NCBI GenBank assembly: GCA_047495785.1 | Contig: JBLDXI010000015.1 | Coordinates: 372,001 to 436,000 of the forward strand | Reading direction: 5' to 3' | DNA: 64,000 nt | From: Lepidodermella squamata | Lineage: Eukaryota; Animalia; Gastrotricha | Notes under the pieces: model-generated | The model's database searches: none | What the model was told of the DNA's origin: nothing | Seen by the model: only the letters and a program-made list of their open reading frames with translations | Shown: positions 28,236 to 61,704 of the stretch, one piece after another | Numbering within the stretch: the first letter of the stretch is position 1 | How the letters are laid out: each line of letters opens with the position of its first letter | Position numbers and translations under genes: made by a program

Positions 28236-31200
28236 ATGAAAAGTGTTCAGCTTGCAATGAAGGCAATTAGGTCCGTTTTCTTGCTGGTACTTCTTCCGAC
28301 GCTTGTAACGAGCGGGACTAATTTCAAACGGTATGCTAATAACTCGATCATACCGACGCCATCAAGCGGTCTGGGAAACCTAAATGGTTACATGATAGCT
28401 TTGACTGAGCCCGCCCGTGTTGTGTCGATTTGCGCAGCATATTGCTCTAGAAACTCGCAATGCCAATCGCTTCAGTTTCAGAAAAGCACGAAATCCTGTT
28501 CACTGTTTACTATCTCACCCGATGGCTCGAGTATCGCGAAACTGGACCCAAATCCCGACTACGATTCCCTGGCTATAACAGGCCAGAGTGAGCTAGCAAA
28601 ATCAGGGCAGTGTAAGGGTAATCAGTGCGTAACGAGCTGGTACTTCGAAGCAATCAAGCGTGAAATCACGCGGCCGACCTGTTGGAAGGAGTTTGCCAGT
28701 GATCCTGCCCCGACTTGTCCGGTCGAAATGCTGGACTACGACACGAGTTACGTCAGCGACCTCGGCTATTCCTCGAGCTCAATGACATACTGGACGGTGA
28801 CTGGGTACAATCTCTACCAGGAGCCACCTTACCACGCCAGAATCACCGCTGGCCACGTGAATTGGTTTGTCTGGGCTGCAAATTCGCCTGCTGGCCAGTG
28901 GATCAAGGTCGATTTGCAGCGATTTGTTTGGCTAACGCAATTGCGCCATCTATGCCGCTATTCTTATAATCAATGCGCACAGCAGTTTCGAATCGACTAT
29001 TCGCTGGATGATGTTACCTACACAACAGCAATGTCTGGCCGAGCAAAGCAACAAGTTAGAAACTCGAATTATTCAGTTTGATTGACTCATCATCCTTCTC
29101 TTTTAATCACTTAGCTCCTAAACGGCCCATTTACCGGCGTAGCCTCATATCAATTTTTTCGGCCAGTATTGGCGCGTCAAGTCAAGCTAACAATCAGCGT
29201 TGAAAACGGAACAGCTCAATTTTTTCGATCCGGCAAATTCGGATTTATCGGATGCCCTGTTGTTAACTGCTTCGAGTCGTTTGGGGTTGAGAGTGGCGAA
29301 ATCATTGACAGCCAACTAATACCCGCTACACCAATGCAGCAAAGCTACTACTCCAGAATCAACTGGGGCTTGGCGGCCGGAAATAGCCCGAGCAGCATTA
29401 CGGTCGACCTCAGAAAATCGGCTTTCATCCGAGCAGTTCAAGTTCAAGGCTGTTCGAAGACGAATTCCTGGGTAACAGCCTTCGGTTTTCAGTATAAAGC
29501 CAACACTGTCGATAATTGGGTTAATTTGGTGGATAATTTTGGATCAAAATCGTTTACTGGCAATATAGATGGTACAACTATGGTTTTGATAGTGTTCCCC
29601 AGCGCCGTTCTCGCCAGATTTTTCACATTAATTCCTGTTTCATTTTCGACCTCAATTTGCTACCGCTTTGAGCTGCTTGGCTGCAAAAGTTAGTTGACAT
29701 AAAACGTCTGAATTTTGTAAATAATTCATTGCTCCTTTCAGCCCCTCCTGTTTACCTTCGCAACTTGGCAGTTAATGGAATAGTCAATGCGGCAGGTTTC
29801 CATACGGCTCTTTCCGCCCCGAGTTTGATAACGCAGCCGCGAGCTGTTCGACTACAGCACCAGCAAAACTGCACACGAATCACTGGCAATCCAGCCAGCT
29901 CAAGCAGGCCCTACGTCACAATCGATTTAGGGTCAACACAAACGATCAGCTCGGTCGATATCGTGACGCCTAACTTGCCCGGCGTAGCTACCCTGAACCC
30001 TGATGGGCTGTGGCTGTTTGACTATCAGCGAGGGGGCGATGACTTGTCGAGCAACGGCAATCACGCCATCATTCCGCCCAGCTTGAGCTACGTAGCTGGG
30101 TTCGATGGCCGTCCTCTGGGTGCTTTGCAGTGGCCGGGAGCAGAACGAGCGATTCTTGTTCGAACGACTAACTTCAATCTGTTAGATAGAAACAATGGCT
30201 GGACATTCGCAACGTGGATTTACTACCCAACGGGAACTACAGGAAGCATGTTCTTTATGAAGTGCTCGTCGAAGGGCATGTAAGCTGGCGGTTTTATAAT
30301 TATTTTGCTTGATATCCCTATTACTTTCAACAGGGGGACCACGTATTGGCGATTAAACATGCAAATTTTATCTTCGCGGGTGATCAAGGTTGATTACACG
30401 ACCAGTTCAACAGCCAGTTGGTCATGGCCGACGATGGATGTCTACGCGCCACCTGATCGCTGGTTCTTTTTGGCTGTTACTGTCGATTGCAAAAGCGGGA
30501 TGGGCCGCGTTTACATCGATGGCGCTGATCGCGGTATCAACCATATCAGTTGCAGTGCGGCGGACTTCCTAATGATGACTGAGTACTTCGAAATTCGAGG
30601 TCAATGGAGTGGTCGCATCGCCTGCATGCAATTCTACAAGCGGGGCCTTGATCAGTCCGAGATTGAACAAGCCTCGCGTTGTCCCTGGCAGAGTAAGTTG
30701 ATTAGAGGTTCTTTGGGACATTTTATAGGTTTTTCTGACGCAGCGCCCCCGCCTGTTGCAATATACCCCCTGGCCTGTACCTTTACTGACGTAACCAGTC
30801 AGGGACCAAGCTTCACCCCGAATGGCAGCCCTCAATGCTCAAAGATGTACGGATTCACATCAACGTGAGTAATTAGATTTAAAAAGCTAACCATAGCCAT
30901 AGCGTATGGAAATTTTCTAGAGCTTGAAACTTTGCGACCGCAAATGACTTCATATCAATGCCGATTTCCACAGCGCCTGGTAATATCCTGGACCTTCAAT
31001 ACTCATTCACTGTTGTCATTCACGTGATGCAACCCAATGCAGCTGATGGCATTATTCTCGGCTGGTACAGCTCTGCTACTACCCCAGTTGTTTACCTGTC
31101 AATTTCTGGCGGTAAATTGGCTTTGGGCGCGAAATGCCGTGGGGCATCAGGCGGCAGCTCAAATTTCACGACTTCAAGGCAGCTCATTGCTAATCATTGA

Positions 31201-33990
31201 GCTTATATCGCTCTGATCTATGACCACGCCGCTGGAACTTTGCTCACAGCTCTCGACGGTTCCGAGAGTTCTTTAATCTCGTTCCCGTGTTCAAATGGCT
31301 TGGAAACTAACACAAGCCTATTTCAAGTAGGAGGCTCTACACCGGTCAATGTTGCCTGTCTCCATTTCTACAAAACAGCGTTGAATCGGAGGCAAATCGC
31401 GTCTTTGAAACGATGCCCAATTTCTTCGACTGCAGACATGACTGCGGTGGCGAGTGCTCCATTGGATGGCTCATATGGCAGCAAATCAATTACGAACGCA
31501 ACGGCGGGAGACGTTATCACGGCTTCTCTTTATCCCGCTGGTTGATTGAAATACCTTTTGAAATACCCTTACTGTGAATATTTGTAATACAGGCTCTGGT
31601 TTCCCATGGCGAGGCAATACCGTTGATGTTTGGGGTCTGTCAAGCAGCACTACGTCACACTATTACTACTCAGTGGCCGGGAGGACCGACTTGTTATTTG
31701 GCCAGGGTTCATCCAACCCAACGCCATACACGTTCGGCATGTTTTTCTACAGTAAGGAATCTGGAAATGGCGTTACGATACCATTGCTCAGCCTCAACGA
31801 ACCTTCGCCGGACTATTCTAAGATCAACATATGGCCTGTAACACCCAGCGGAATCACGTATAGAGTCAACATGTACGGTACGTCGGATACTACGTACACG
31901 AGCTATACAACCGCAGTGACAAATGTGAGCTCTTACTTCAACATATGGCGGCATCATATGTTGACCTTTGACATGACCCCTGGGGCCATGCGATATGAAG
32001 GATTCTACGACGGTGCGAAGATCGTAAGTGTACCACTGCCTAATGTTAGGCCGGGGCCAATTGGTCGCTTTGGAATCGCTCATGATATGTACCAGAACAC
32101 TCTCGTAACCCGGGGCGATATCGCGTGCCTCACCGTATTCCAGGGCTACCTTAGCCAATATTTAGCGACGGAAATCGCTACACTGTGCCCCGGACCTGTG
32201 TTGCGTAAGTCTTAGGGTTACAAATTTACTTCAACAATAACGTTGTTCCCCTTCAAAAGTTCAAGGACACATCTGCGAAAGCGATTTGAATGTTCGAGCC
32301 ACTGCAAGCTTCAGCTCTGTATTCACATCGGCGGCTGGGGTAAAATTCGACCGGTTCCATCTGCAAAATCGATGGACCGGGGATGCGAACACGGCTGGCT
32401 CAACTCCGTGTTGTTGGCAACCAGCTGCTTCTGATTCAACCCCGATTCTGACTCTCGACCTTGGCGAGGAGCATACGATAGCTTCAATCGCAACCCAGGG
32501 TGACTACTCAACCGGCTTCTACGTCACAAGTTTCCAGATGTCATACGGGACCCCGGTCAACTACTTTTTGTGGGTCTACGAATTGCCGAGACCTACGGTT
32601 GTAAAAGTTAGTCATAAACTCAGCATTTGCTGGTCATAACCATTCAAATTATTTAGGTTTTCGCTGGGAATGAAAATAGCGATGGAGTTATTTGGAATGC
32701 CATTCGACCTTACTTTTCAGCTAGATACGTCCGAATCCACCCTCAAACATGGGTCGGCGGCGTAGGATTGCGAGTTTTACTCCGCGGTTGCCCAGGTAAC
32801 ACAATGATACTTTCACTAAGATCCTCTAGTAACAGAATTGCTCAGATTTCTTCTGCGAGGCCGAGTTGAATGACGGCAACAGCAGCAGTATCAGTGTTTC
32901 CACCACTCAAACACCAGCTGTTGAACCACAGACGTTCACAATCGGAAGCACTGTCGACTTCCGGCCTCTCTCAACTGACCCTCAGCCCTATTTTCAAATA
33001 ACTTTCCCGTTGACAAAACTGATATCGGCTGTCGCGGTTCAATGCAGTGTTGACTCGACATCGTGGATCACGAAATACCATCTCATGGGCAGTTTGGACG
33101 GCATCACATGGACCGGATACGTTTGGCCTCACAACGGTTCGAGGCTCAGAATTTTCGATGGCCCATCAGCCTCAAGCAATCCTAATCCGTTCATATCCTA
33201 TTTGAGCCCGTATCCGTTTCAAACTGCTTCGTTGCGTCTGGTCATCGATGACTTCAATGTAGCCCCGTATGGCAGATTCAGCTTCAAAGGCTGCTCCGCC
33301 CCGAGTTCAGACAACTCATTTGCATCGATAGTCTCACCGCCTGTCGGCAAGGTTTCAGCACGATTGAGCTCGTCAGCCCCAAGCTCAGCTTCTGATGCAG
33401 ACTCCCAACCGCAATGTTCGCAAATCTCTCGAGTCCCCTATGGTAGACGCGTTCAGTTGCAATGTGAAAACGGACCGATTTCTGGTCGATATCTCAGCCT
33501 TGTTGGAGCTAGTCAGGGTTCTACAATTGAGATTTGCCAATTTGGAACTTATTACGACAATGGCACAGATTTCGCTAGGTACAAACTGGTTACGAGTAAC
33601 ATCTCCTCGATTCCAGCTGCGACTCTAACCGCTCTCACCACGCCTGGTCCAAATAGTGTTGGGGCATCACTGATTGCTGGATGGCTTCAGGTCGATCTCG
33701 GTGGCTCATACTCTGTCGGGAAGGCCATTGTCATTACACAGCAAAGTGGATCTTGGGTCGTTGAAAATCAGCCAGGTAGCAGCCAGTTGACCATTAGAGT
33801 CGGCATGGCCTCTGGGGCAAATCTCAGATCGAACCCTGTCTGCGACTATTGGCAGGATGGCAATCGAATCAATGTCGTCCAAGGCCAGGCAATAACAATG
33901 CACTGCTTGCCTGCTTTGAATGGACGCTACGTTTCCGTCGAAAAATATGGCACTGCAACAATTCAAATCTCGCGAATTATGGTTTTCTGA
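28236..33990 (+). CDS. Secreted mosaic PAN/F5-8C/LamG/F-type-lectin protein, paralog B (divergent; ~10 exons; in-frame TGA at 30925 and 31198)
   Basis: Signal peptide (start at 28236 or 28257); same domain order as paralogs; exons checked join in frame through short GT-AG introns; terminal TGA aligns with paralog stops. Confidence 0.8.
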
Positions 33991-39303: not shown

Positions 39304-40690
39304 GTAATTGTGAGAGCTAATCGAAACGCCATTGTTATTCTGGATAATTGTGAGAGTTTATCTGAACGACATTCACATTACCTTGGTTACCGGTGTTCGC
39401 AACTTCTAATAATTCCTTAATATTTCACTTATTTGTGCCAATAAAGCCACGTGTTGAGGCGACTCATTTTAGCAACCCATGAGGCGGCTGCTCTCTGGGA
39501 CGTAACAAACATTAAACTATAAACTGACCAATATTTTACAACATGTGACTTTGATTTCATTAATATTCGATTCAGGCCGTTTTATCATGAGTTGATTTAC
39601 GAAAGACTGATTAACAAAAGTGTTGCAATGATTTGATTTGTAAATGATTTAGCCTCGGTGATGCACAGCTGATTTGGGTCTAGAGAATCGCCACTTCTAG
39701 AGAACATAATCACCTCTGGTCTGTGCTGAGTCTGGATTTAGATGGCCGCTATCCTGACTTATCCTGACAACAAGCAACTTCAGAATGTGCAAAAACCCAA
39801 AGGTTTAGCCTCGTACTCAACATTCTTGATGAGATTTTCTATTTCTTTTGATTTATATCGGTTTAGATGTTTTGATGAGATAAACAGAAATACTTGAAGG
39901 TTTCGAATTAATATGATTCATTTAAGAGTTTAACTCTATAAATAAAGTTAAATCAAGTCACTCATTTTGAAGCAAAGTTACAGTTTAACTGGTTCATGCC
40001 TTCAGATCGGTTTGAGGTTAAAAACTTCGAGGAAAAGTTACCAATTCTTCATCTAGATTGGGGAAAATATTGATCAATAAAATCCAATGTCCCATGACTC
40101 ATTCGGGAATTGTAAAGCTTCGCGCTTTATCTCTAACCCATTTTGCTCTCCAAGCTAATTAAGCTCTTAAAAAATTATTACAACAGATATGAATAATTAA
40201 TTGCACGATTTTGCGATCGATGAACCGCATCCAAGTACTCAGGCGGGAATAGGTGTGAGACTGCAGAACGGCCGACTCCATCCCTTGGTTCACCGCGAGA
40301 GAAACACCAGCCACCATGTCTTCTTACTGTTCCACCGGCGCATCGCGCAGCTCGCAAAATATGATTTAGTAATGAACCTTATACTGCATGCCAGGTTCCA
40401 GGTGAACACGAGCACGAAATAGCGGCGATCGAGAAAGGCAGGCGCTATTACTAACACCAGTACCAGCGGATATTCTAAAAAATACGCGGGATTGAACCTA
40501 GATTAATGGGCAGAACGAGTGTTCGTGAAATACAATAATTCGATGGTAACTATCGATTAGGGCGGTGTCTGTCCTAGTTCGCCCGCTCGGTAACTAGCGA
40601 AACATGAATCAATAATTCGCGAGTATATGTAGCAAATTAACTACGTCATAAAACAGTAATAAAACTATAACACTGAACTTGTCACTAAAC

Positions 40691-43600
40691 ATGAAGCAGT
40701 TGTGCATATTCTTCTTGTTCTTTCAATTGGCGTATGCGGGCGGTTACCATTACAACATCTACCCTGGGATGGGTTTTGTGCCAATTACAGCTGGCTACAA
40801 CCTCTCAATACAAATTGTCGGCAATTTGAGTTCAATAAAAAGCGCTACACACTGCATGGCATCCTGCAATACCAACGTTCTATGCAAATCCGGCCAATTT
40901 ACTCCGAGTGCTGAAGCTTGCCTACTCTGGACCTTCGGTGTACCTGGGTCACAAGTCGCCCAATTAGCTAACAATGCCTTGACGACTTCGTTCTCCATCA
41001 CGGCGCAGAGTAATATGGTGAAATCGCGCCAGTGCTCGGCGACGACTTGCGATATCACGTGGATTTGGGATGCAGTTCTGAAATCAGCTTGGACTGCGCC
41101 TCACTTGCTGCCGGGCGTAGCGAGCGATGAAATTGGAGATTACGACAATTCCTATGTCAGCGATAACGCTTATTCCGCGAGTTCTGTCTACCTATTGGAA
41201 TACATCCAGCAGGGTCGGCTCTACGCGCAGCACAATTACTATCATTCGTTTGCACGCAACGCCCCAGTCGGGTCCTGGCTTCGGATCGACCTTGAACGAT
41301 TCGTTTGGATGACCGAGTTTCAAGTACTTTGTAAAGGCTGCTTCCTCAGGGTCAAACTTGAGTACAGCTTTGACGGGGTGGACTTTTACCCACTAGATAA
41401 CGGCCATGGTGAACCAGCATTTCTAGATCCTGTCTCTCTGGTTCTCTCAGCTTTCACTCTATTCCGGCCAACGCTAACTAAGCACATCAGAATGTCAAGT
41501 GCTGTGGAAAACCGAACTGCGACCTACAGCACATATGGAAGATATGCGGTCAAAGGAAGCCCTGCCCAATGTTTCGATCCTCTTGGAATGGAGAGCCTGG
41601 AAATAGATGATACGCAGCTTTCGACCACCATCACCGGCCCGTACTACTCGAGACTGAATTGGGGCATGGCACTTCAGGCCAACACGCAGCCTCTCCAAAT
41701 CGATTTGAGGAAGCAAACAATTGTAACAGGCATTCAGCTGCAAGGATGTGAGCAACTGAACTCATGGGTCACGGTTTTTAGCCTTAGATACAAAGCTAGG
41801 CCGAGGGATGCCTGGACCGATGTTGTCGAAAACAGTGGCCGTAGTGATCTGAAAGGCAACGTTGACAGCACTCGGATCGCGACAGTCGTATTTCCGAAGC
41901 CAATCGTCGGCCAGTTGTTCCTGATCGAGCCGAGTGGCTTCTCGGGGTCGACTCGTTGTTTCAAGGTAGAGCTGCTAGGCTGCAGGACTGTGCCGAGATA
42001 TACTGCGAATCTCGCCTTCAGAGGCAACGTTGTAATAGCTGGTGCGCCTGAGACAGATACGTTGCTGGGTTTTCCGAACGCTTCAGTTATTACTGCAAGC
42101 CGGGTTATTCGGGAGAAGAGCTACATGAACTGCACAAAACTGAAAGCTGCGAATTTATTCTCTCGTCCTTGGTTGACGATCGATCTAGGCGTGAAACGGA
42201 CCATCACCTCAGTCGAGTTGACCACCTCGCAGATGGATCCTCAATTCTCGCTAGTTCCAGATGGTTACTGGCCTCTGGACCTACTTCACAGGGCTGATGA
42301 TTTGAGTGGAAATGGCAACAACGGGATTTATTCGAGCTCACTGAAATTTGGCAATGGTACCGATAATAGGTCTCTTTCCGCGCTCGAGTGGACAGGCTCC
42401 GGAAAGCTGCTGCTGCCGATGGACAACTTGGCAGTGGACAAGAACAATGGCTGGACGTATGCGGCTTGGGTCTGGCATACCAGCGGCGAGATTAATCTTG
42501 TCAACAGCAGCCAAGTGGAGTAAGAATAAAAATGATTCGCTTATTTTCACTTCGGATTTGTTAGGGAACTCTAGTTAGGAACAACCTCCAATTGCATAGC
42601 TTAGGACTTAGGAAGTGGTCGTTTTCTAGGCCATACACAGATAAAGTTAAAATTTAGACATTTGTATTCTGACTACTCTCGCAATTTTCCCTTTCCAAGT
42701 TGGCAACCGTGTTTACGCATTTGGATCGACGATGCGGGAAACGTCCAAGTTAACAAGGCCGAAGGCGTTTCCGGCACCAGGGCTTTTCCGTTTGCTACAA
42801 ATATGGGCCCTTTGAATCGAGTTGTAAAAAATCAATGGGTTCACGTCGCTGTTACGTTCAACTGCCGCTCGAGCGTCGCTCGCGTTTTCATCGACCGCAC
42901 TGAGCGTGGCATCGCCTGGATACCGTGCCAGCCAGCAACGGCCGTCAAAGTCAACGCCTACCTCGTGATTGGCGGCTCGTGGACCGGCAAGCTGGCGAAC
43001 ATTCAGATCTACAGACGGGCATTAGACAACGACGAGATCGAGCAAACGGCGCAGTCACGCTGGACGCGTGAGTTTTGCCGCGGTTGAGCGTAGTCTTCAA
43101 TAATTAATTACTTATAACAGCTCCGGTACCAACTGTCTTGTTCCCGTTGGCATGCTCGCTCGACGATCTGATCACGCCGAACGGCAATTTCTCGATCGCG
43201 GGAAGCCCGTTGTGCGAGAACTTTCTCAGCTACAGCAGAGCGTAATATTGATTTTAATCATTTTATTCGGTTTGTTCATGCTTAAGATTGTTGAACCCAG
43301 CAAACCAGCCTAATCTATAACGCGAGTGTTGATTGAAACTTTCAACCTCGTAAAATCTTGATCAAGTTGATCAGGTTAGCTTTCTACGATGCTGCAGAGG
43401 AAGGATGATCAATTTTCGAATCGAAGAAGTTAGCAATGCTAGAATCAAGGAATAACCATTATAGATACATGTATATGTAAGCGACTCTGAAACGGGGTCA
43501 CTCATAAACGGCCATAGACAAAATAGGCAACCAGGAAAGTACACTATGTATGAACGTGTTGAAACAGGTTGAAACGTGTTGAAGAAATCAAATAAAATCA

Positions 43601-46600
43601 AAGTCACCGGGCCCTCCTAGAAAAAACCCATCTGGTTTCTGGCGGAGTAATACCTTGGGCTATGATTCATGGTGTTTGATAGTACTTGCTAATGACTTAT
43701 ATATCATCAAACGGACAGATTAGAGTGATTGGTAAGCATGTTTTTAGTACAATCGCATATGGCTAGGTAGAGAAGTTCAAGTTGAAAATGATCCAATGGC
43801 AAATTAGGTGTTTACTTTTAGACCATTTGGATATTTGACTTCTCTGGGGTATTGTCTAGATTGTTTCTAAATCTTTTTTACTCGTTATGTTGTTTAGGGC
43901 ATGGAGACTGCCCAGCGAGGCCGATTATCTGTTCGCCACCAGCGCCTCAGTAAGAATGTCGAATCAATGGTCTACCAGCCTGTTAATCCACGTGAGACCT
44001 ACCAGCGCCAGCAGCGGTTGGTTGCTCGGTTGGATAGATACTGTGTCGGCCAGCAATTTCAGTGTTGGATTCAGCATAACTTCGTCCGGCTATCTCAGGT
44101 TGTCGTTATTATGCGCCGGCGGCAACAATCCGTTGAACCTAACATCTCGTGCGAAATTGTTAATCAACGAGTGGAACTACATCGGATACAGCTACTACTA
44201 CAACAACATACTTTACCTGGTTCACGAGGGTGAGTTCGTTGCGAGCACAACAGGAATCGGCGCTTGCTCTGGCGGTGGCTTAGCAACCAATAGAGCCATC
44301 TTCAGAATCGGCGGCCCTGGCTCTGTTCCTGCGAGCTACGCGTGTCTCATCTTCCACCCAGTAGGTTTGACTCGCAAATTCGTCTATTCGTCGAAACGAT
44401 GCCCGATTACTTCTACGAATGAAATGAAAGCTCGACTGGTAACACCATTTGACTTCAATAACGGACTGTCGACACTTGCTGACAACAACGACATATTCTA
44501 TATGAACGGCTCAGCAGACCGGTCGACGAATTTCCCATGGTCAACGGGCGATTCGAATGTCTACCGGTTCAAACCCTCAGCCATGAATTACCTGACGTCG
44601 ATTAGCTATCCGGTGACACACAAAATCGGTTTAAACCGATCAGCCCCTCTGCCCTCGTACACCATGGCTGTTCACGCCTATCTGATGTCTGACATCACAG
44701 CCGGGCGCATGCCGTTGATCCAACACGTCGACTCGAGCTTCAGCCCCACATTCTCGCTGCAGCTTCACAATGGCTCGGCGATTAATTACGAACTGAAGTG
44801 TGGCGGGGTGCAGACCGCTCGGGATCAAGGCGGCGTCACGCTCAACCGTTGGCAGCATCATCTGGTCACCGTCGACTTCACGCCGGGCTCGCATGTCATG
44901 ACTGGCTACCGAGACGGAGTGGCTGGTGCAAGCAAAACATTTTCTGATTGCATTCCTGATGATTCTACAAACTTCGTCATAGGAAGAGTAAGTTGTCAGA
45001 ACTTAATTTTTAAAAAGCTTATGAAAGATTGGATCACTTGTGCTTTTGGCCCTTATAATCCCCTTGGACCTTGACATGTTTGAACGAATTTTCAAAGTTT
45101 TTCAAATCCTTGAGGGGTATCGTACCCCCAGTTCGGCAGGCGAAAGTGGGAAAACCGCCAAAAACCACAGGGGCGATCCTTTGGTCTTAAAATTGGGGCC
45201 CGAAAATTGCCCATTTTTCGAGGATCCTACTTCGCGCACTGATATCAATCCTGAAACTTGAATCTCTATGGCTTATGATTATGAAAACTTGAATCTTCAA
45301 TTCAACCCTCAGAATGGATTGGCAGCTGAATATTTCAATGGCATGATGACTTGGCTGGTCATTTACCAAACTGCTGCAGATTCACTGCTAGCAATGGAGC
45401 TCGCCAATCAAATTCCCACGCCAAACATACGTAAGATACATTTGCTACTTGTAATCGGCGATAGAACTGTTTATAATTATCACAGTTGAGGGCCATGTTT
45501 GTGAATCGGATCTTACTATCACTTCGAGATGGAACTACAGCTCCAACTACTCATTGGCCTCGCCACCGTACGGCGTTTGCTCCGATGCGAATGACATACG
45601 CGGTTCGTTAGGTTGCAGTTGGACACCAGCTAACGCGTCTTCGTCTGAATTCTTAACTCTCGATTTCGGCGAGCAGAAAGTCGTCCATTCAATCGCAACA
45701 GCTGGCGATTCAACCAACAACTGCTTCGTCCGAACCTTTCGACTTTCCTATAGCAATAATGGCGTTACGTTTAAGGAGTTCCACGACCGTGCGAGAGGCT
45801 TATCGTCTACTAAAGTTGGTTTCTTGAATTCTGGTTAAAGCTTTTATATTTGTATCATAATACCTACTTAGATTTTCTCTGGAAATACTGATTCAACTTC
45901 GACGCAGTGGAACTTCATAAGGCCTCAGATTGTTGCCCGATTCCTGAGATTCATCCCTGACTCTTGGAGTGGCCACATCTGCCTTAGATGGCGGGTTCGC
46001 GGCTGTGCACGTAAGTTCTCAACGATTCTTGGCTTTGACCCATTGGACTCATTTGAATATTTTTCAAGATCAATTCTGCAACATTGAGCTTTTCGATAGT
46101 GATGCAGTTGGAAATGCTTCAAGTGCAACTAGTCCCAATAGTTTGAACAATACTGATATCGGCAATGCAGATTGGATCCCGTTGGCAACCGATCCCCAGC
46201 CTTATTTTCAAATCGCTTTCACACAGCTGAAAATCCTGAATATCGTCGCAGTTCAGTCGAGCGCGACTTTGGCCGCTTGGATTGAAAAGTACCATCTGAC
46301 GTCAAGATTGACTGGGTCTAGCTCTAGGTGGGTGGCTTATAACTCTGGGAATAACCCTCCGAGGATTCGCATTTTCGATGGGCCTTCGAGTGGCCCAAAT
46401 TCTGATCCCTTCATCAGCTACCTTAAACCGGCTCTAGTCGCAGCTGCAGTTCGATTGTACGTCGACAAGTTCACCCTGCAGCCGATCGGGAGGTTCAGCT
46501 TCAAGGGCTGTAACTACGTTGAGGTTCCCTACTCGATGTATGGCTTCAAGATCGGTGTATCAGATATAGTCCCTACAACGGCTAATATCGACTCGCTGAC

Positions 46601-47174
46601 GCCGTGCAATATTGGAGGCGGCTCTAATTTCAATCGACATATGCAATTTGATGCGAAAATCTCCGTTCCGTGTTACCCGCCAGTTTCAGCTCGATACATC
46701 TCAATCAGCCAAGACACACGCGGCGCGGATATGCAGTTGTGCAAGGTAGAAGCAACTTTCGAGCCGGGAGCGAATCTGGCATATTTGAAGCCGGTCACAT
46801 CGTCGGCCGCCCTTTCGTATTCCCAGGTTACCGATGGGTCATTTTTATCAGTAGTCAACACTGGGAGCTCGGCTAATTTCTGGGTCCAAATCGACCTCGG
46901 CCAGTCGCTTCTCGTGTCCAAAGTTGTGCCGGTGGCTTCGAGTAACGTAGATTATTCTGTGGCTATTAGCTATGAGCTAGTGGCCCGAGTCGGCGATTTG
47001 ACGAGCGCCACTGCTAATGCGATTTGCGACGTGTATCGAGCAAATGTCGTGCCGGTTTTGACAGCTAGCCAATCGATGCCCATGTACTGCACGCCACCAC
47101 TGAAGGGGCGATACGTCAGGATTGACAAATCTGGCGTGATGCCAGTCAATTTTGTTCAATTTCTTGTATATTAA
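40691..47174 (+). CDS. Secreted mosaic PAN/F5-8C/LamG/F-type-lectin protein, paralog C, intact (1699 aa; exons 40691-42519, 42700-43067, 43121-43241, 43898-44987, 45313-45430, 45486-45814, 45872-46010, 46069-47174)
   Basis: Signal peptide MKQLCIFFLFFQLAYA; exons sum to 5100 nt with compatible phases and no internal stop. Confidence 0.88.
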
Positions 47175-50794: not shown

Positions 50795-51534
50795 GTGATT
50801 CCACAAGAATTCGAACTGGAAAGTACCTATACATAACTTATACTACTGCTGTCTTTTGAAATGGGCTGAGATTTGAATAAAACAACCCACCCTTGTTTAC
50901 ATACATTTATGTTTACATCAAATAGCCAAATTTTGGTTCAACTCCGTCGGTTGAATACTCTAGATACAGTGGTGGGATTACTCATTTATAGCTGACGTTT
51001 CGACGCCGATCGATTCCCACACCGAAGAAATATAAGGAAACGGTATGACGTACGACAGAGCGTATAGCAATGCATTTCACGGCTTGCCATCATTTGCTTC
51101 TCTGAATTGCATCGAAAAGAAAAAAGAAAAATAGCTGCATATTATTTTCAGCCGATACATTTGCTCCTTTACCAAACAACAGTTGAATACGGTTTACCAC
51201 GATCACGTTGATACTTGATACGGTAACCAGGGTCACGAAAAAAGCAAATCATGTGACAGCGTACAGTAGTAACGTCACGGCTAGCCTTGATGATATAGAA
51301 AGCATGGAATAATTTCGGCAGGAATCCATCTGCCAATTATTTTTCTGCTCGCAAATTTGCGCCGCTATCGACCAGAAAAGTTCATTTTGCATCGGTTGGA
51401 TCTCGCATGCGTTGGCGTTATCTGAAATTCGTTGCAATCATGTCCATCACTCCCTCATTTATTGATCACTGGTCGCTGTACCCTTTAGCGAGCAGAGAAA
51501 CCGATATATTTCTTTTAAAATATTGCAAAATAAT

Positions 51535-54500
51535 ATGAATCCCTGTTAGCTTTCCTGTGGTTCGCAACTCTGCTGCATAGCGTCGTAGCTGGAGGTTACT
51601 ACAACATCTACCCTGGGAAAGCCATTGGACCTATAGCTGGCTATAATCTCTCGGTCTACCTTGCTGGAAATCCAACTTCGGCAAAACTAGCCGTCAACTG
51701 CATGGCTTCTTGCAATGCGAACGATCTTTGCAAATCTGGCCAGTTCACAGCAAGTACCTGTTCCATGTGGAGCTTCGATCTGGCCGGGTCTCAAATCGCA
51801 CAGTTAGTTGCTGATTCAATCGCCATCTCGTTTTCGGTCTCAGGTGTCGAGGGAATCTTGAAGAAGTCTCGTCAATGCTCAGCTAGCACGTGCGCTGTTA
51901 CTTCAATATGGGACGCGATTCAGAAGTCGGCTTGGACTGCACCTCACCTGTTGCCACAAGTTGCCAGGGAAGAAATAGTTGATTTCGACAATTATTACGT
52001 CAGTGACTTGGCCTACTACGCGATATCTGTTAACTCATATTCAGAAAGTGTCCAACAGTCCCGGTTATATGCCAACAATGCTTACTACTTTGGCTTAGCC
52101 GACAATCCGCCTATTGGGGCTTGGATTCGCGTCGACCTGGAGCGCTTCGTTTGGATGACCGAGTTTCACTTTCTCTGCTTCAACTGTCCGCAGATGCTTA
52201 AAATCGAATACAGTTTCAATGGACTTGACTTCTATGCTATCGATAAAGGCCATGGCGAACCAGTGTTTCTTCATACTGTCGCCGGAGCGGTAACCAAGTT
52301 CACACCATTCCGACCTTGGCTCACGAAACACGTGAAATGTTCGAGCGCATTCGAAAACAGAACTTCAAATTACGGTTTTCAAGGGAAGTTCGCAGTGAAA
52401 GGAATTCGTGCTAACTGCTTCGAGCCTCTCGGTATGGAAAATTTAGAAATCGAGGATTTTCAACTTTCAACGCCAAACAAAATCGCAAGCTCGTTTCACT
52501 CGAGACTGAATTGGGGACTGGCTCCGCTGGCTAATTCGATGCCACTTATTATTGACTTGAGGGAGCAGACTGTGGTCACAGCGATCCAACTGCAAGGCTG
52601 TAGCCAGTTCAGTTCATGGGTCAGCATTTTCCTCCTCCAATACAAGGCCAAAACCACTGATAATTGGATCGACGTGCTGGATAACGGCGGCCAGCGAAAT
52701 TTGAGAGGCAACGTGGATGCAACTGGGATAGCTACTGTTGTATTGCCAAAGCCTATAATTGGCCAATTCTTCTTAATCAAACCTTTGAGCTATACAGGGA
52801 ATGTTCGATGCTACAAAGTGGAACTGCTCGGCTGTAAAAACGTGCCTAGATACACCCGGAATATAGCGTTTGAAGCTGTTGTTGCCAAGGCTTACAGTGA
52901 AGACGCAGATCAACTGCTAGGCTTTCCCAAGGCATCCGTTGTCACTTCTAGCCGCCTGATTCGGGAGAAAAGTTTTTTGAACTGTTCCAAGCTGAAGCGT
53001 GGCACAGCTTCGTTTCTGGACCGTCCTTACGTGACCGTCGACTTGGGCGAGACGAAAACTGTCACATCGGTTGAAATCACTACGCCGCAACTGGACCCTA
53101 AGTTCGCTCTGGTTCCGGATGGTTATTGGCCACTTGGGATTATGCATCGCGCCGATGATCTGAGTGGAAATGGCAATAACGGCGTGTTTTCAAGCGGGTT
53201 GAAATTCAGCTCAGGCGTGAATGGGCGGGCTCTTTCAGCCCTTGAGTGGACAGGCTCAGGGAAACTACTATTACCGATGGATAATTTGGCTGTTGACAAA
53301 AATAACGGCTGGACATTCGCAGCTTGGGTTTATTATACCAGTGGCACTCTTAACCTGGTGAATTCAAATCAACTAAAGTAAGGGAACCTAGTATTTTAGT
53401 TTTTATGCTAAATTAATGATAAATCTAATTCCAGTTCGGTATCTTGTCTGCGAGTTTCAATAGACAATGTAGGAAACTTCCTAGTGGAACGGGCTCGTGA
53501 TTGCTCTACATCTTCTCAGAGCTTTCCCTTTCCAAATGCTTTGGGCTTGAATAATGTCTATGTGTCGAACAATCGATGGTTTCACGTGGCCGTGACGTTT
53601 GACTGTCGCGCGAGAATCGTTCGCTTTTTCATCGACCGCGTCGAACGTGGGATTTTGTACGTCAACTGCGCGCCATCGACCGCCGCCAAAGTCAACGCCT
53701 ACCTTGTGATTGGCGGCTCGTGGACCGGCAAACTGGCGAACATTCACATTTACAAACGCGCATTGGACAACGACGAAATTGAAGCAACGGCGCAGTCGCC
53801 TTGGACGCGTGAGCTTGCATCCTTTGCCGCATGTTTACACGCATGTTTATCGATTCACAGCTCTGCCACCTTGGGTTTTGTTTCCCTTTGCGTGCAGTCT
53901 AGGTGATCTCGTGACAGCAAACAACGCATTCACAGCTGCTGGAAACCCTGTGTGCGATAAAGTTTTAAGCTACAGCAATACGTGAGTACGAATCTTCATT
54001 GATGTGGAAGGGAAAGAAAAGAATAATCAGAATATGGCTCAATTCCTAAAAAAATGGTCGCTTTACTTTCGTTCGGCCTCAAAGATGAATTGGGCGATCA
54101 AGACTTAAGCCGGATTTGTGTAAATTTCACGGCCGCGTGCTGATGTCAAAAGGCTAGTTTTATACGGAAAAAAAGAAACAATTCAGACGATTCTCTATCG
54201 ATTGAATAATGTGTTCTCGCGTGAGAAAATTCATGCGAAAAAGTTATACATGCGTCTAAGTTTTGAGAAGCGAGAGCGCGTGCTCTCATCCGTTTGCAGT
54301 GATCCAACTAGGTCCAGCTCCGATGGGGTAAATTAAGCCATTTTGAACCCCAACATCAACAACAGGGGCAAATCAACAGGGGAGGGGGAGGGCCCTTATG
54401 TTTTTAGGAAATTTTCGAACACCAGGGGGGGGGGGTTGTTTGCCCCCCTTGCCCCCTTACTCAGAGCACTGCCCGTTTGACCTTTATTTTGGCGTAAAGA

Positions 54501-57500
54501 CCGCGTAAAAGTAACCTCTTGGCATTAGCCCGCGACATAGAGCATAGAGCAAGTTTTAGGATATAGAGTTCCTACTCCTGACTAAGCCTGTAAACGCCAT
54601 GAGCACCAGATTGTGATGAGTGTTGGAAAAGTAAACAGATCAGGTGAATTTTTAGTCCCGCATTCTCATTCATGGAAATCTCCTTAAAGAAAAACTAGCT
54701 TGTACCAGATAGCGCTTCTAATGGTGAAGATTGCGATTATTTTTTCAAAATTTTAGAAGAAATGCAAAGTAGTGGAATCGTGATAATCAATTTCGTGATT
54801 TAAGATAAGTCGACATTAACTAATAAATAAATCGATGGTGTGTAATTCGGATCAAGTTCTACATTTTGATGCTTGGGCGATCTTGGAAGATTTTTCCTGA
54901 TTTTCTATAATGGCCCCAAGTGAAAGTTCTATTAGCGATGAGCAAGTGACAGCGCAGTAGAACCCATCTCTCACCAGAAAAACTCTCACCGCGGAAAATC
55001 ACTCGGAAAAACTGTCCAGCTCGGCAAAAAACTAGACTTTTGACAGAATACTGTCCACAGACAAACTCTCGCTAATTTGCATATTTAGTTTTTTTGATTG
55101 AGGCAGTTAAAAGGCCCGAAATTGTCGCTCAGGGTGATTTTATGAATTATTCCACTTGGTTTTTTTACATTGAAAAATGTAGATTGCCCCATGGATTCTA
55201 TCCAGAATCTTCTTTGACAGCACGTGCGCCATGTGCATATGGTGTGGCTGGATTGCGTCGAATGTAGTGAAAATGATTAAATGATAAAAAAAATTCCAGA
55301 AAATCAGAAAACAATATTCCAAGCTCGCTCCAAACATCGAAATCTAGAGCTTAATCAGAATCACCTTTTCGATTTCAGATACAATAATGTAGTTGAAAAA
55401 TTCAACTTCTCATAGCTTAAAATACAGCTAATTGTGACTACGGGCCGGGCCGGGTTCCGAAAATTCGGCCCGTGGACAACTCTGAGATACATTTCAATTT
55501 CCCTGTCTTATTTTGGCCAGTGGCGTATTTTATTAATTAAATATTAAAAATTTTGAAAAAATTATCATTGTCTCAAGAGCTGGATCTGGATCTGGATCTG
55601 CCGCAAATTTTTGATTGTGATTAATCGTTCAAGAATAATGACCGATGGAAAATCACCTGATTTGTTCACTTTTCCAACCACTCCAACCACTGATTCATTA
55701 CAACGTTTGGTGCCCATGGCGTTTACAGGCTTAGTCGGGAGTAGGACCTCTATCGTAAAACTAGCTCTATGGCCCGAGTGCAACTGAAAGTCTTGAAAAT
55801 TTCGACTTGTGCACAAGTCCATTTTTTACCATCTTATCGCACAATTAATGTTGGGGCCAGCAGAAACTAAGGGGGCGTGAAATTGAGCTATAGCATGATA
55901 GACTTTAATTATCAATATCAATTTTCCTGATACTGTAGCGCTTGGAGGCTTCCCTCGGAATCTGATTATCTGTGGGCGAATGCATCAGCTAGAAGAATAA
56001 GCAACGCTTGGACCTGGTCCCAAGCTTTTCATTTCAAACCAAGCAGTTTTGGCGGGCTGCTGATGGGTTGGACAGATACGCTGGCCTCTTCAGATTTCAT
56101 CGCCGGATTCAGCACAGCTCCTGCCGGCTTTCTGCGATTCAATTTCGCCTGTGGCGGCAACTCCACGCAAATCACTGTTACCTCGCCAATCAAGTTGCTG
56201 CTAAACCAATGGAACTACGTAGGATTTGCATTCGATTACTCCCGCGCCACTGTTGATCTGTTCCAAGAAGGCGAAGTCGTTGCATCAGTTGGCGCCGCTT
56301 GTTACGGCGTCGGTATCCAAACAAATCGCGCGTATTTTCGAATCGGAGGGCCGGGCAGTCAGCCGGCCAGTTTCGCTTGCCTTAGCTTCTATTTTGCGGC
56401 ACTTTCTCGAAGATTTCTCCACTCGCTGCGGAGATGTCCGATAACCTCTTCAAGTGATATGACAGCGACCCTGGTAACACCTTTTGACTACAACAATGGC
56501 CTATCTTCAGTTGATAGTCCCAGTAATGCGTTTGTTGTTAATGGTCCCTCTCTCCAGGGACCAAGTTTCCCCTGGGCAACAGGCGATAGCAACGTGTATC
56601 GCTTCGCAACAGCCAGCGCTAATTCGTTGACTTCCGCATCCTACTCGATCGGGTTTAAAGTCGGCTACAACCGAACAGCCCCGTTGCCCCCGTTCACAAT
56701 TGCAGTCCACGCGATGCTCTTTTCAAATTTGACATCCGGATTCCAACCCATTGTCCAGCTGAACATGGGCTCAACCGCTTTGTTCGCGCTTCGAATTCAA
56801 TCAACAAGCAATTCGATCTACTACGCATTGCCTTGTGGAGGGTTGCAGTCAGCTTACGACTACGGCATGGCTGCTGTGAACCAGTGGCAGCATCACTTGA
56901 TCAACAACGTCGATTTCACCGCAGGTTCACATCGTTTAACTGGATATCGCGATGGCGTGGCTGGTGTAAGCCTGAACTTCGCCAACTGTATTCCAGATAA
57001 CACGGATAACATTCTCATAGGAAGGGTAAGCTTTCTTTGATAAATAAAATGGTCCTCCTTTTAGCGGAACCAAATTTCGGAATTTTCCAGTGGCCTGAAA
57101 TAGCTTTTTGGAGATTTCTTGCAGGTCAGTATTAGCCAAAGTAATTCTATAAAAATTACCAGCAAATTCAGCGCGAAATTCTCTGCAAGGCTTAAAATTA
57201 GTAGAATTATTCAAAAAATAACCATTGGCATATTTCGACATTCATTCTGCAAAAAGCAAATTTAAAGCAAATTTGGTTCCGCTCACACTATAAATGTGGT
57301 TCCGCTCACACTATAAATGTGGTTCCGCTAAAAGATATTCCGTAAATAAAATCTTGTTTTCAATGAAAAATTAGGATGGCAATACAAACGTCTACTTCAC
57401 CGGGTTGATAACGTGGCTGGCTATCTACCAAGGTCCTATTGATTCGCTTTTAGCCATGGAACTGGCTACTCAGATCCCAACGCCAAACATAAGTAATAAT

Positions 57501-59234
57501 CAATAGAAATAATCAATAATTTTTCACAATGTTTCTTCATAGTGCAAGGCCACGTTTGCGAAACCGATCTGACTATGACTTCATCATGGACCTATAGTTC
57601 AAACTTCACGTCAGCCTCGCCTCCTTATGGTGTTTGCTCTGATAGCAATGACGTGCGAGGTTCCATGGCATGCAGCTGGTCACCAGCTTCTGCATCTAAC
57701 ACAGAATTTCTTACTTTGGACTTCAGCGAGCAGAAAATTGTTCATTCAATAGCAACAGCAGGCGATTCAGCTAACAACTGCTTCGTCAGAACCTTTCGAC
57801 TATCCTCCAGCAACAACGGAGCTACCTTTATCACATTCTACGATCGAGCGAAAGGTGCTTCGTCTACAAAGGTATGTTTTCGATAGAAATGGTAAGCCTG
57901 AGCTAAATTCGCTTTTCAGATTTTCGTTGCAAACAACGATTCTACTTCGACTCAATGGAGCTTTATGAGGCCCTACATCATAGCTCGTCATCTCAGGTTC
58001 CATCCAGAATCTTGGAGCGTTTTCATCTGCTTGAAATGGCGAGTTCGAGGCTGTGCACGTAAGTTTTGTTTATTACATACCTTAGACACAATCTCGATTC
58101 AAACTTAACGCAGATCCATTCTGCAATATTGAACTCTTCGATAGCGAATCGGTCGAAAACGCTTCTAGTGCAACTAATCCTAGCGATTTAAGTAGCAACG
58201 ATATCGGTAATGCAGACTGGATTCCGCTAGCCACAGATCGGCAGCCTTACTTTCAAATCACATTCGCCAAGTTGAAAATCGTGAATATCGTCGCCGTTCA
58301 ATCTAGTGCGACGTTAGCTGCTTGGATTAAAAAGTACCATCTGACGTCACGGCTGATGGGAGATAGCAAGTGGGTAGCCTACACCTTCGGAAACAACGGG
58401 TCGAGGATTCGAATTTTCGACGGACCTTCAAGCGGGCCGAATTCAGCACCTTCATTCAGCTACTTGAAGCCAGCTCTAATAGGCGCAGCTGTTCGATTGT
58501 ACGTTGACGATTTCACCCTACAGCCGATCGGAAGGTTCAGCTTCAAAGGCTGCAACTATGCCGATGTGGATCCAGCAATTTCCTGGCTGAAAATAGCTGT
58601 TTCAAGCTCAGTGCCTAACGGTTCAGCTTCAACTGTGGACGCGATGCCGGTATGTAACGATGCATCGAGCCTGGTCAATTACGATCCCAATGTGCCCTAC
58701 AACTCAAAGATATCTATCCCTTGTTACCCGCCAATTTCCGGCCGTTATTTAACAGTTGTTTCAGAAGCGCGTGATACGGATATGTTTATCTGCAAAATCG
58801 AGGCTAGTAGTGAGAATGGGGCTAATTTAGCCTTCCTGAAGCAAGTGACCTCCTCCAGTTCAACGGCCTTGCAGAATTCTAGGGCGACTGATGGCTCTTT
58901 CAGCGTGCTTATCAACCAAGCGAGTTTGGCCTCCTTCTGGTTTCAAATCGATCTCGGCCAATCGGTTTTTGTCTCGAAAGTTATGCCTGTTGTGGCGTAT
59001 ATCACATTTGACGCAACGCTTTCTTCGAGCTACGAACTCATCGTTCGAGTTGGCGATTCGGCTAACTGGTCAGAAAATGCAGTTTGCGACGTCTGGAAGG
59101 CGAATTCAATGCCGAACCTGGTGATGGGCCAATCCATGCCGATGTACTGCACGCCGCCTCTGCTCGGCCGATACGTTCGAGTCGAAAAATCGGGCGCTAT
59201 GCCCGTCACATTTTCTGAAATTTTGGTTTATTAA
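51535..59234 (+). CDS. Secreted mosaic PAN/F5-8C/LamG/F-type-lectin protein, paralog D (8 exons; apparent 1-bp deletion just after the ATG)
   Basis: Signal peptide SLLAFLWFATLLHSVVAG is in frame with ORF 51702-53381 but one base out of frame with ATG 51535; remaining exons match paralogs A and C and are open. Confidence 0.8.
54297..54471. mobile_element. hAT-type MITE, family of 2799-2964
   Basis: CAGTG..CACTG ends; TSD TCCGTTTG/CCCGTTTG; internal homology to the reverse complement of 2799-2964. Confidence 0.7.
57058..57334. mobile_element. MITE with CTTTTAGCGGAACC TIRs in an intron of paralog D; related ends at ~50180 and ~59613
   Basis: TIR pair plus a 23-bp tandem duplication GGTTCCGCTCACACTATAAATGT at the right end. 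Confidence 0.65.
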
Positions 59235-60825
59235 CTCTAACTCTACCCTCACCGTCTGCCCTTATTTATTAGCGCATATCTTGCTTGCATATCGCCGTAT
59301 TTTACTATAAAATTTATAATCCAAATATAGAATACATAGAAGGAGAAAAGAGCCAGCGAAAATATACTATAATTGAACTCTTTTCCCATGCTAATACAAC
59401 TTTGCTCAGCTTTGCTCTCAGAAGGAAACATCTGATAGTATTGCTCATAGATAATAGTAAAGATCGGACGCTTACGATCCTTCCCACACATTTTAGGGTG
59501 CAACGCTCGCCATGTGCAAAGCAATATTTTTGTGGTTTTAATTTGAGCCATGCGCGCACAGCTAGATGCATTTGTCGATTATTTCAGGACGAATAGCATA
59601 TTCTGAATATCTCTTAGCGGGACCAAATTTGCTGTATCGGAACTAAATTAGCTTTTTGGGGTACCAAACTCGAAATATGCCATATTTCTAAGAATTTGAG
59701 GCTAAGAATGAATTCTGAATTGAACACTGGCGAATTTCCTAGAATTATTCTAACCGAGTTCAAATCCATCGAAATTATCTGTACTCGTTTTCATCCCCAC
59801 TTCCATGCTTTTTTTTAATTGTCCAACTATATCCTCAGCATAGGCAGAAATTCGTTATCGATCATCCTCAATTTGATGATGTTCTTGTTCCTTCTTCATG
59901 CTTTTCATGTTCATGCAATCATCTCCACGTTTGTGGTACGCTGCAAAAACCACAACTGCACTATATGCTTAGAGGTGTCAACAGTCAGGTATCGATTTGC
60001 TAGCTTTTCGGATTTCGGCTCTTTTAAATGTGATAGAACTGGCCAGTAGCCAGTAAATGGTGCTGTTGTTACGAGTTTCAAGAGTCGATATCTAATCAAC
60101 CTTTACTTGCCTTTATCTTTCACTATCAAAATCAAATTATAATAATGCATAATGCTGTGTCTTGCTGATGCGCTTCAGAACTTCTATTTTTGCTTAGACG
60201 CTCTGAATAAATTATGTAGAAATTATAGTCCAGTTTTTAAGTGGATCCCGACATATGAAATATGGGAATATGTGCTATTCAGCTGAAAGCTGAGCCATGA
60301 GACTAGCATTGGAGGTTGGTTCTCAGCTACTGTCGCATCAAAATGTCTCTTTCTCGGTGTTCGGACTAGCCCCAGCTCCAAGTGGTAGCAGTTTGCATTT
60401 TCCAGTTCAGTTGCCGCAACTACTGCATTTTAAGTTGTGACACGTGACACAACCTGGTACTGCATTGTTTGCTTTGTTGATAAACCCGTATTTGTAGTAG
60501 GCCAGTAAATAGTGCTGTTTTAAGAGTATGACGAGGAACTAGGACTACAGATTGAGCTTGGCTTTACATTTAGCTGTACTGGAAAATGTTATTTCTCGTC
60601 ACTCGGCAAAAGACAAGTTGTTTGCTTGCAGGTGTCACTCTTTATTAGAAAGATGAAAGGTCAAGAAACTAGTGTGTAATCATCAGTGGAAAGCACCCTT
60701 CCCTTGAAAACGAAACGGGTAAGGTGTCAAAAAATGAATCAGATCAGTTGCAGAGCAGGCGCAGACTCGAAGCAGTTGGAAATTGGGAAATCAAAAATAA
60801 GATGGAACTACATAGCCGAAATTGC

Positions 60826-61614
60826 TTATGCAGACTTGGCGGTGGTGGACCTCTTGTTGCAGCGAGCCCTAGCGGAGCCAGTCTGGGGGAGCTGCTGGCG
60901 GGGAGCGGCGCCAGAGCCAGAGCCAGACTGTTGGCGGGCAGCGGCGGCGGCCTTGGCGGTGGTGGACCTCTTGTTGCAACGAGCCCTAGCGGAGCCAGTC
61001 TGAGGGAGCTGCTGGCGGGGAGCGGCGCCAGAGCCAGAGCCAGACTGCTGGCGGGCAGCGGCGGCGGCCTTGGCGGTGGTGGACCTCTTGTTGCAACGAG
61101 CCCTGGCGGAGCCAGTCTGGGGGAGCTGCTGGCGGTGGGCAGCGGGACCGGAGCCAGAGCCAGACTGCTGGCGGGCAGCGGCGGCGGCCTTGGCGGTGGT
61201 GGACCTCTTGTTGCAACGAGCCCTGGCGGAGCCAGTCTGGGGGAGCTGCTGGCGGTGGGCAGCGGCACCGGAGCCAGAGCCAGACTGCTGGCGGGCAGCG
61301 GCGGCCTGGGTGGTGGAGGGGGCGGGCTTCTTGCTGCAACGAGCCTGACCAGAGCTAGCCTGCTGCTGACGGGCTTCGGCGAGCTCATCGGAATCTCCTT
61401 CCTCGGAAGATTCCTCGGATTCGGACTGATCACCGGAGTGCTCACCAGAGTGCTCACCAGAGTGCTCACCAGAGTGCTCGTGGGAGTGAGAACCATGAGG
61501 AGGAGGAGGATGAGCAGGATGATCCTGAGCGTTGCGGCCAGAGGCCGGGGGACCCTGAGAGTCAGCCAAGACGACGGCAACGAGAGCAGCAACCAAAGCG
61601 ATGCGGACGAACAT
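60826..61614 (-). CDS. Secreted low-complexity repeat protein (262 aa): His/acidic N-region followed by four 39-40-aa basic Gln/Ala/Ser repeats
   Basis: Signal peptide MFVRIALVAALVAVVLA, AAAG-ATG context, upstream TATA box, AATAAA at 60646-60641, single exon. Confidence 0.82.
   Translation of the reverse strand: MFVRIALVAALVAVVLADSQGPPASGRNAQDHPAHPPPPHGSHSHEHSGEHSGEHSGEHSGDQSESEESSEEGDSDELAEARQQQASSGQARCSKKPAPSTTQAAAARQQSGSGSGAAAHRQQLPQTGSARARCNKRSTTAKAAAAARQQSGSGSGPAAHRQQLPQTGSARARCNKRSTTAKAAAAARQQSGSGSGAAPRQQLPQTGSARARCNKRSTTAKAAAAARQQSGSGSGAAPRQQLPQTGSARARCNKRSTTAKSA
60838..61345. repeat. GC-rich coding tandem repeat, 117/117/120-bp units plus a degenerate unit
   Basis: GGCGGTGGTGGACCTCTTGTTGC recurs at ~60838, 60955, 61072, 61192. 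Confidence 0.9.
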
Positions 61615-61704
61615 CTTTAGTTTTATAGTTTTTTAAGAAGTAAACTATAGAATAAGATTTAAAGCCGAAGGATAGGTGTGATTTCAGCTCCGAAATTCCC
61701 TTGC

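Follow-up and report, generated by a model that had tools for sequence, protein, structure and literature searches.

Organization of the Locus and Domain Order

The window analyzed here, a stretch of 64,000 nucleotides (nt) of the gastrotrich Lepidodermella squamata (contig JBLDXI010000015.1, positions 372,001 to 436,000 of the forward strand), consists of animal DNA with many tiny introns and contains four paralogous genes, A, B, C and D. Paralog A is encoded on the minus strand (~27295-19639), and paralogs B (~28300-33990), C (40688-47174) and D (~51534-59231) are encoded on the plus strand; all positions are those of the window. The predicted products are mosaics of lectin-like modules in which two pieces, separated by five other domains, probably represent the halves of one F-type lectin domain (FTLD). 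This arrangement is described below mainly for paralog C.

The exon model of paralog C was built from the blocks conserved with A, B and D together with frame-keeping GT-AG sites. It comprises eight exons on the plus strand (40688-42519, 42700-43067, 43121-43241, 43898-44987, 45313-45430, 45486-45814, 45872-46010, and 46069-47174), and five of the seven introns measure 53-58 nt. The predicted product has ~1700 aa, close to the 1699 aa of the original prediction. Since it starts with a hydrophobic N-terminus (MKQLCIFFLFFQLAYAGG) and ends in ..FVQFLVY, without a membrane segment at the C-terminus, the protein is probably secreted.

The order of modules in paralog C is a signal peptide, a PAN-like module, two F5/8C (discoidin) domains, a first lectin-like piece (N-piece), three LamG domains, two more F5/8C domains, a second lectin-like piece (C-piece) and an unsplit lectin-like domain, and this layout is common to A, B, and D. 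An exon-by-exon Pfam analysis of paralog C detected a weak PAN, two F5_F8_type_C, three Laminin_G_3, two F5_F8_type_C and a C-terminal PF22633 (F5_F8_type_C_2), and the corresponding exons of A, B, and D showed the same families. The PAN-like module (PAN_1, weak) and the first F5/8C domain are located in exon 1 upstream of 41570. They are followed by discoidin 2 (41570-41983; PF00754, E 2.2e-18, in two stretches), which lies directly upstream of the N-piece (42005-42232, 76 aa), with the sequence ANLAFRG..NCTKL..RPWLTIDLGVKRTITSVELTTSQ.

The insert between the two pieces (42233-46511) contains 965 coding residues distributed over eight exon pieces, in agreement with the ~960 aa anticipated, and the expected five-domain composition was found in all four paralogs, with Laminin_G_3 and F5_F8_type_C matches lying between the pieces. 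In paralog C these domains correspond to LamG1 (42233-42519 and 42700-43067), LamG2 (43121-43241 and 43898-~44440) and LamG3 (~44440-44987 and 45313-45430), all of them matched by Laminin_G_3, and to discoidin 3 (45486-45814 and 45872-46010) and discoidin 4 (46069-46511), both matched by F5_F8_type_C. Discoidin 4 begins with FCNIELF and closes with FKGC, that is, it carries Cys at both ends. Next come the C-piece (46512-46769, 86 aa; ..FKIGVSD..C..C.PP.SARY..LCKVE.., with the inner Cys pair in TPC..VPC) and the unsplit C-terminal F-type-lectin-like domain (46770-47171, 134 aa), which covers positions 2-91 of 91 of PF22633; like the preceding features, both are on the plus strand. The unsplit domain scored 27 bits against a hidden Markov model (HMM) of canonical FTLDs (27-32 bits over the four paralogs), and a PDB profile search with it returned only weak, mixed matches to the galactose-binding-domain-like fold.

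In the other paralogs, the N-half and C-half were located at 25700-25927 and 20047-20307 (minus strand) in A, at 29747-29974 and 33295-33564 (plus strand) in B, and at 52863-53090 and 58554-58820 (plus strand) in D. In paralog B they read NCTRI..RPYVTIDLG and ..C..C..SGRY..EICQF, respectively. The motifs of both pieces were thus recovered in the four paralogs where the original prediction had placed them, together with the two Cys codons at 42131 and 46740 of paralog C. The claim that the C-piece motif occurs with its C..C pair in every paralog has to be corrected for A, in which this inner pair is replaced by F and S and the Cys of SICKIEV is kept.

Both borders of the insert lie within coding sequence. 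The N-piece/LamG1 junction is a single open frame free of introns in six sequences (A, B, C, D and two relatives described below, L001 and L003), and the same is true of the discoidin-4/C-piece junction in five (A, B, C, D, and L001). The linkers at both junctions are short (~5-10 residues).

Complementary Homology of the Two Pieces to F-Type Lectins

The N- and C-pieces were searched singly, each against canonical FTLDs, PDB, Pfam and a discoidin profile. The canonical FTLD profile (A3) was constructed with six domains from the proteins P0040, P0064, and P0090. A profile of six N-pieces (A1) aligned in hhalign with columns 40-69 of the canonical profile (probability 78%, E 1.8e-5), and a profile of five C-pieces (A2) aligned with columns 79-142, up to the end of the domain (probability 92.5%, E 5e-7). 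The nine template columns left between both matches correspond to the fucose loop (KRKSIGEMW / NRxDxxxxR). Template columns 1-39 were aligned solely in the HMMER match of the N-piece to the eel agglutinin structure 1k12. Homology to FTLDs is therefore present over the whole domain, in the form of two complementary pieces.

The searches against 177,635 distinct PDB sequences gave a similar picture. The top match of the N-piece profile was eel agglutinin (1k12_A residues 10-77, E 0.059), the aligned region ending one residue short of N78-R79, and that of the C-piece profile was striped-bass FBP32 (3cqo_A residues 224-288, E 3.2e-4); the latter profile also matched, weakly, the second half of the other FTLD in 3cqo. 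A plain HMM built from the six canonical FTLDs gave weak per-sequence scores for the halves, which matched complementary parts every time. In Pfam, the N-piece matched positions 18-41 of PF22633 with 27.3 bits within its exon and 17-18 bits when isolated. Language-model look-alikes of both pieces belong to the F5_F8_type_C and F5_F8_type_C_2 families and are taken as leads only.

An origin of the pieces as discoidin fragments was also considered and was rejected after a control with the family's own discoidin profile (A7), which matched just a 20-column W-x-x-DLG strand of the N-piece that is shared with FTLDs and gave no match to the C-piece (probability 0.4%). Unsplit canonical FTLDs come after discoidin domains in P0040 and P0064. 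Altogether, these alignments support the proposal that the pieces are complementary halves of one FTLD-derived domain, as far as homology can indicate it, and that the insert replaces the R-x-D-x4-R loop, to which the nine unmatched columns correspond.

Cysteines and Ligand-Binding Residues

Eel agglutinin contains the disulfides C50-C146 and C108-C124, as well as a vicinal C82-C83 bond in the fucose loop (PMC5712786). In paralog C the Cys of the N-piece (codon 42131-42133) aligns with C50, and the Cys of the C-piece (codon 46740-46742) falls on that of LCEVEV in striped-bass FBP32, which is equivalent to C146 of the agglutinin. The assignment of the two long-range Cys to the FTLD disulfide partners, which had been anticipated, is thereby borne out by the alignment. 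The C..C pair of the C-piece aligns with C108 and C124, and B, C, and D have Cys at all four FTLD positions. All four paralogs keep the outer pair, of which the relative L001 has lost both members (ENAARIP and VVSALRAY at the respective positions); the inner pair is kept by B, C, D, and L001, and A has lost both of its members. The unsplit C-terminal domains lack both outer Cys, as had been noted for that of paralog C. This paired keeping and loss of Cys fits the expectation for disulfide partners. Because L001 is split and yet lacks both outer Cys, the outer disulfide, if it forms, is dispensable for the layout.

Recognition of fucose by FTLDs involves the motif H-x(24-26)-R-x-D-x4-R/K, with the triad His52, Arg79, and Arg86 in eel agglutinin, and the calcium ligands include Asn40, Ser49, the carbonyl oxygen of Cys146, and Glu147 (PMC5712786). 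The fucose motif is absent from the split domain: the His52 position is occupied by K (A, C, and D), R (B and L001) or E (L003), and the R-x-D-x4-R loop is gone, with the insert in its place. The calcium ligands are not conserved either: in the alignment with 1k12, the NAIDGN stretch is matched to vvtssr, in a region where the alignment is weak, and the Cys equivalent to C146 is followed by K or Q instead of E. For these reasons canonical fucose binding is unlikely, and the split domain most likely acts as a structural hub or scaffold. Ligand binding, if any, would be left to the LamG, discoidin and PAN modules. Judging from the types of domains it contains, the whole protein probably serves in recognition or adhesion outside the cell, as a multivalent molecule.

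Selection and Relatives of the Family

Synonymous sites are saturated among A, C, and D (proportion of synonymous differences, pS, 0.66-0.83). The corresponding nonsynonymous values (pN) were 0.20-0.28 for the N-piece and 0.29-0.36 for the C-piece, compared to 0.21-0.25 for discoidin 1 and 2, 0.26-0.30 for the C-terminal domain and 0.08-0.13 for discoidin 4. Both pieces are under purifying selection and represent conserved protein, not decaying linkers.

When 1.84 billion representatives were searched exhaustively by phmmer with exon 1 as query, no full-length relative was revealed; the search detected two metagenomic fragments only, P0002 and P0034, which show the same N-piece-to-LamG junction as the window and derive from contigs that are eukaryotic scaffolds in metagenome assemblies. 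A whole homolog, ~35% identical, was found in eukaryotic metagenomic sequences from two separate assemblies (L001 and L002), with the order PAN, two discoidin domains, N-piece, LamG domains, two discoidin domains and C-piece. In another sequence, L003, the N junction is kept and the sequence stops before the C-piece. Protein searches with the last exon retrieved nothing except the open reading frame (ORF) of L001 itself, and scans of metagenome contigs gave nothing or unrelated LamG-repeat proteins (L004 and L005). No database protein spanning both halves was found in the protein and contig searches. The family is rare in public data.

L001 also contains a second nesting. Its C-terminal FTLD-like domain (5780-6585), the counterpart of the one that is unsplit in the window, is interrupted by a SUEL lectin domain. 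SUEL lectin domains bind rhamnose or galactose. In BLASTP, residues 2-59 of the window domain are matched by the first part of this FTLD-like domain (E 4e-6) and residues 63-133 by its second part (41% identity, E 4e-16). Between the two parts lies a complete SUEL domain (PF02140 positions 1-80 of 80, 32 bits, above the cut-off) within an insert of ~95 residues. The second part comes after a phase-1 intron of 59 nt (GTAAGT..AG, 6291-6349). The insertion point is the loop past the ..V-x-V strand that follows DLG, and it matches the loop that holds the five-domain insert. At the level of sequence, this natural pair of an unsplit (window) and a split (L001) domain shows that, in the same family, this loop accepts whole domains.

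State of the Paralogs and DNA Coverage

The four genes are not equally well preserved. Compared to C and D, paralog A contains a 1-nt frameshift in the LamG2/LamG3 exon, in a CCC run near 23544 (23480-23600, minus strand), and is either a recent pseudogene or affected by an assembly error. Paralog B is far more divergent (33-40% identity), its first-exon region is fragmented into several ORFs, and it may be a pseudogene. In paralog D, the open frame has its first ATG at 51702; a signal-peptide-like stretch (LLAFLWFATLLHSVVAGG; 51534-51702) precedes this ATG, and there is no Met between the upstream stop and this stretch.

A search for sequencing runs that contain the paralog C locus retrieved no RNA run and one DNA run, which covers the stretch and revealed no structural joints or rearrangement except at a repeat in intron 4. 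In that run, this purine-rich repeat (45111-45240) was covered at a depth ~6-fold in excess and occurred in several length variants, with loose ends; it is probably a dispersed or variable simple repeat. In the same run, clustered single-base differences at ~45:55 depth were detected in 42095-46490, which suggests that two haplotypes of paralog C are present in the sequenced sample. Outside the four genes, a GC-richer block (0.52) at 60686-61620 contains long overlapping open frames on both strands.

Proposed Assembly and Alternative Explanations

Based on the layout, the complementary homology, the Cys pattern and the selection on both pieces, the split domain of these proteins is probably a single beta-sandwich derived from an F-type lectin, that is, a discontinuous host domain (A1-B-A2) with five domains nested in its fucose loop. 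The first half (approximately agglutinin residues 10-77) would follow directly after discoidin 2 and the second half (~87-148) would come ~965 residues later, with three LamG and two discoidin domains taking the place of the N-R-x-D-x4-R loop. After translocation, the halves would assemble into one jelly roll, which in A-D would be pinned by a disulfide homologous to C50-C146 of the agglutinin; the base of the insert would be tied together in this way. Discoidin and LamG domains usually have their termini close together, so five such domains in a row would not need to bridge a long span. The inserted domains would be gathered at the former sugar-binding face in a compact cluster, nearer to a rosette on the loop than to an open ring; the "ring" closed by a lectin clasp that was originally envisaged would be a less fitting picture.

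Several observations weigh against this reading. When isolated, the N-halves score weakly (17-18 bits in Pfam, below the cut-off, and E 0.059 in PDB) and the C-halves gave no match in a Pfam scan. AlphaFold2 models, computed on exons flanking the insert with alignments of 5-6 sequences, had pLDDT values of 49.7 for the last exon of paralog C (A5) and 37.4 for the discoidin, N-half and LamG1 of a relative (P0002:1-455, A6), both too poor to interpret. At six times the size of the host, the insert departs from the general pattern, in which hosts exceed their inserts in size (PMC13114784). The sequences that keep or lose the Cys pairs amount to about three independent lineages, so that the co-loss comprises two or three events. 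The exon model and the lack of an isoform that skips the insert were both predicted from DNA alone.

The pieces could instead be independent relics of two different ancestral FTLDs that never pair and now act as linkers or pack on their neighbors (discoidin 2 and LamG1 in one case, discoidin 4 and the C-terminal domain in the other). The AlphaFold2 models, too poor to read, reveal no pairing, the C-half is the least conserved segment (37-52% identity between paralogs), and FTLDs often occur in tandem (PMC5712786). Such a history is nevertheless improbable considering that the pieces meet at one loop without overlap and with no strand missing, that the outer Cys are kept or lost jointly, and that the SUEL domain of L001 illustrates how the same loop takes inserts in the same family; moreover, half a jelly roll would be unable to fold alone, yet both halves are under purifying selection. 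A domain swap, in which the N-half of one chain pairs with the C-half of another to give dimers or head-to-tail polymers, would agree with the sequence tests as well as pairing within the chain does. With ~965 residues between the halves, closure within one chain loses most of its entropic advantage, and oligomers would be useful to a secreted multi-lectin mosaic. The short linkers at the junctions and the Cys-bounded last domain of the insert are, on the other hand, consistent with easy closure within the chain, and the single SUEL domain of L001 is an ordinary in-chain insertion; swapping is considered quite improbable.

It is very unlikely that the arrangement is an artefact of the gene model or the assembly, with transcripts that skip the insert and encode a contiguous lectin domain, or with the two parts belonging to separate genes. 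The exon structure is predicted from DNA alone, paralog A has a frameshift, and a frame-compatible but weak GT (42254) / AG (46551) pair is present around the insert. An insert-skipping isoform was nonetheless rejected as improbable, the candidate splice sites being poor (GTTCCA donor), and the same colinear layout recurs in all four paralogs as well as in L001/L002, which come from two different metagenome assemblies. Both junctions fall within long open exons, strong purifying selection acts on the insert, as exemplified by the pN of discoidin 4, and the DNA run contains no structural joints beyond the intronic repeat.

A broader proposal is that the fucose loop of this scaffold is a recurrent docking site that displays other recognition modules, namely the five LamG and discoidin domains in the window and SUEL in the relative, and that the halves might pair between chains into polymers. 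This is rather unlikely on present evidence; if true, the scaffold would be a platform for "domain display" that exists in nature, and it would put the folding of discontinuous domains in secreted proteins to an extreme test, the host having to await its second half for ~965 residues. Returning to the single discontinuous domain, if the halves do co-fold, these proteins would offer a naturally occurring system in which to study how discontinuous domains with distant halves fold in the secretory pathway, as well as an example of a lectin turned from binder into scaffold. They would also be a warning for annotation pipelines, since Pfam detects only a sub-threshold fragment of the host.

Comparison with Known Systems

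The closest known structures are the F-type lectins of Anguilla anguilla (agglutinin, 1K12) and striped bass (MsaFBP32, 3CQO), which are the top PDB matches of the respective halves. Their signature (NLA.., xC-T-x, PW-x-x-DLG, the V-x-V strand, F-x-I-x-G, C..C, GRY, and LCxVE) is here spread over both halves, with Cys at the equivalents of C50, C108, C124, and C146. In contrast to these lectins, the split domain is broken in two, with ~965 residues in place of the N-R-x-D-C-C-x-x-R loop; K, R or E takes the position of His52, and conservation of the calcium ligands is lacking. Mosaic proteins that combine FTLDs with pentraxin, discoidin, CCP or C-type lectin-like (CTLD) modules have been described, such as PXN-FBPL of Xenopus and FTLD-FA58C of Microbulbifer, as well as tandem arrangements (PMC5712786), and P0040 and P0064 are further examples. 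They resemble the window paralogs in that FTLDs are joined with discoidin and pentraxin/LamG-type jelly rolls in secreted or membrane proteins; however, their domains are arranged in tandem, whereas the window paralogs carry five domains inside the FTLD.

Regarding domain insertion in general, a survey of 48,551 insertion events found them in ~20% of multidomain proteins, the inserts being usually single domains with close termini and smaller than their hosts (families of ~133 vs 241 residues), and nested insertions are known in RNA polymerase (PMC13114784). The proteins described here share the general A1-B-A2 logic of a host interrupted at a surface loop by autonomous domains. They differ from the surveyed insertions (PMC13114784) in that the host has ~160 residues and the insert consists of five tandem domains, ~6 times the size of the host. 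The SUEL-split domain of L001 belongs to the same family and shares the loop and the A1-B-A2 logic; it differs in having a single insert of ~95 residues and an ortholog that is unsplit in the window. In the integrin beta subunit, the hybrid and beta-I domains break up the PSI domain, which a long-range disulfide closes. That disulfide ties two parts of the host together, as the candidate C50-C146-type disulfide would do in the window paralogs.

The original prediction knew of no described family with this topology. This stands for FTLDs, no description of a split F-type lectin domain having been found in the literature searched, but not in a wider sense, given that domain insertion in general is common (PMC13114784). 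The arrangement is therefore not a new kind of system. What is unusual, and new for FTLDs, is the size ratio between insert and host, the fact that the host has lost its own binding site, and the occupation of the same loop by a different lectin in a relative.

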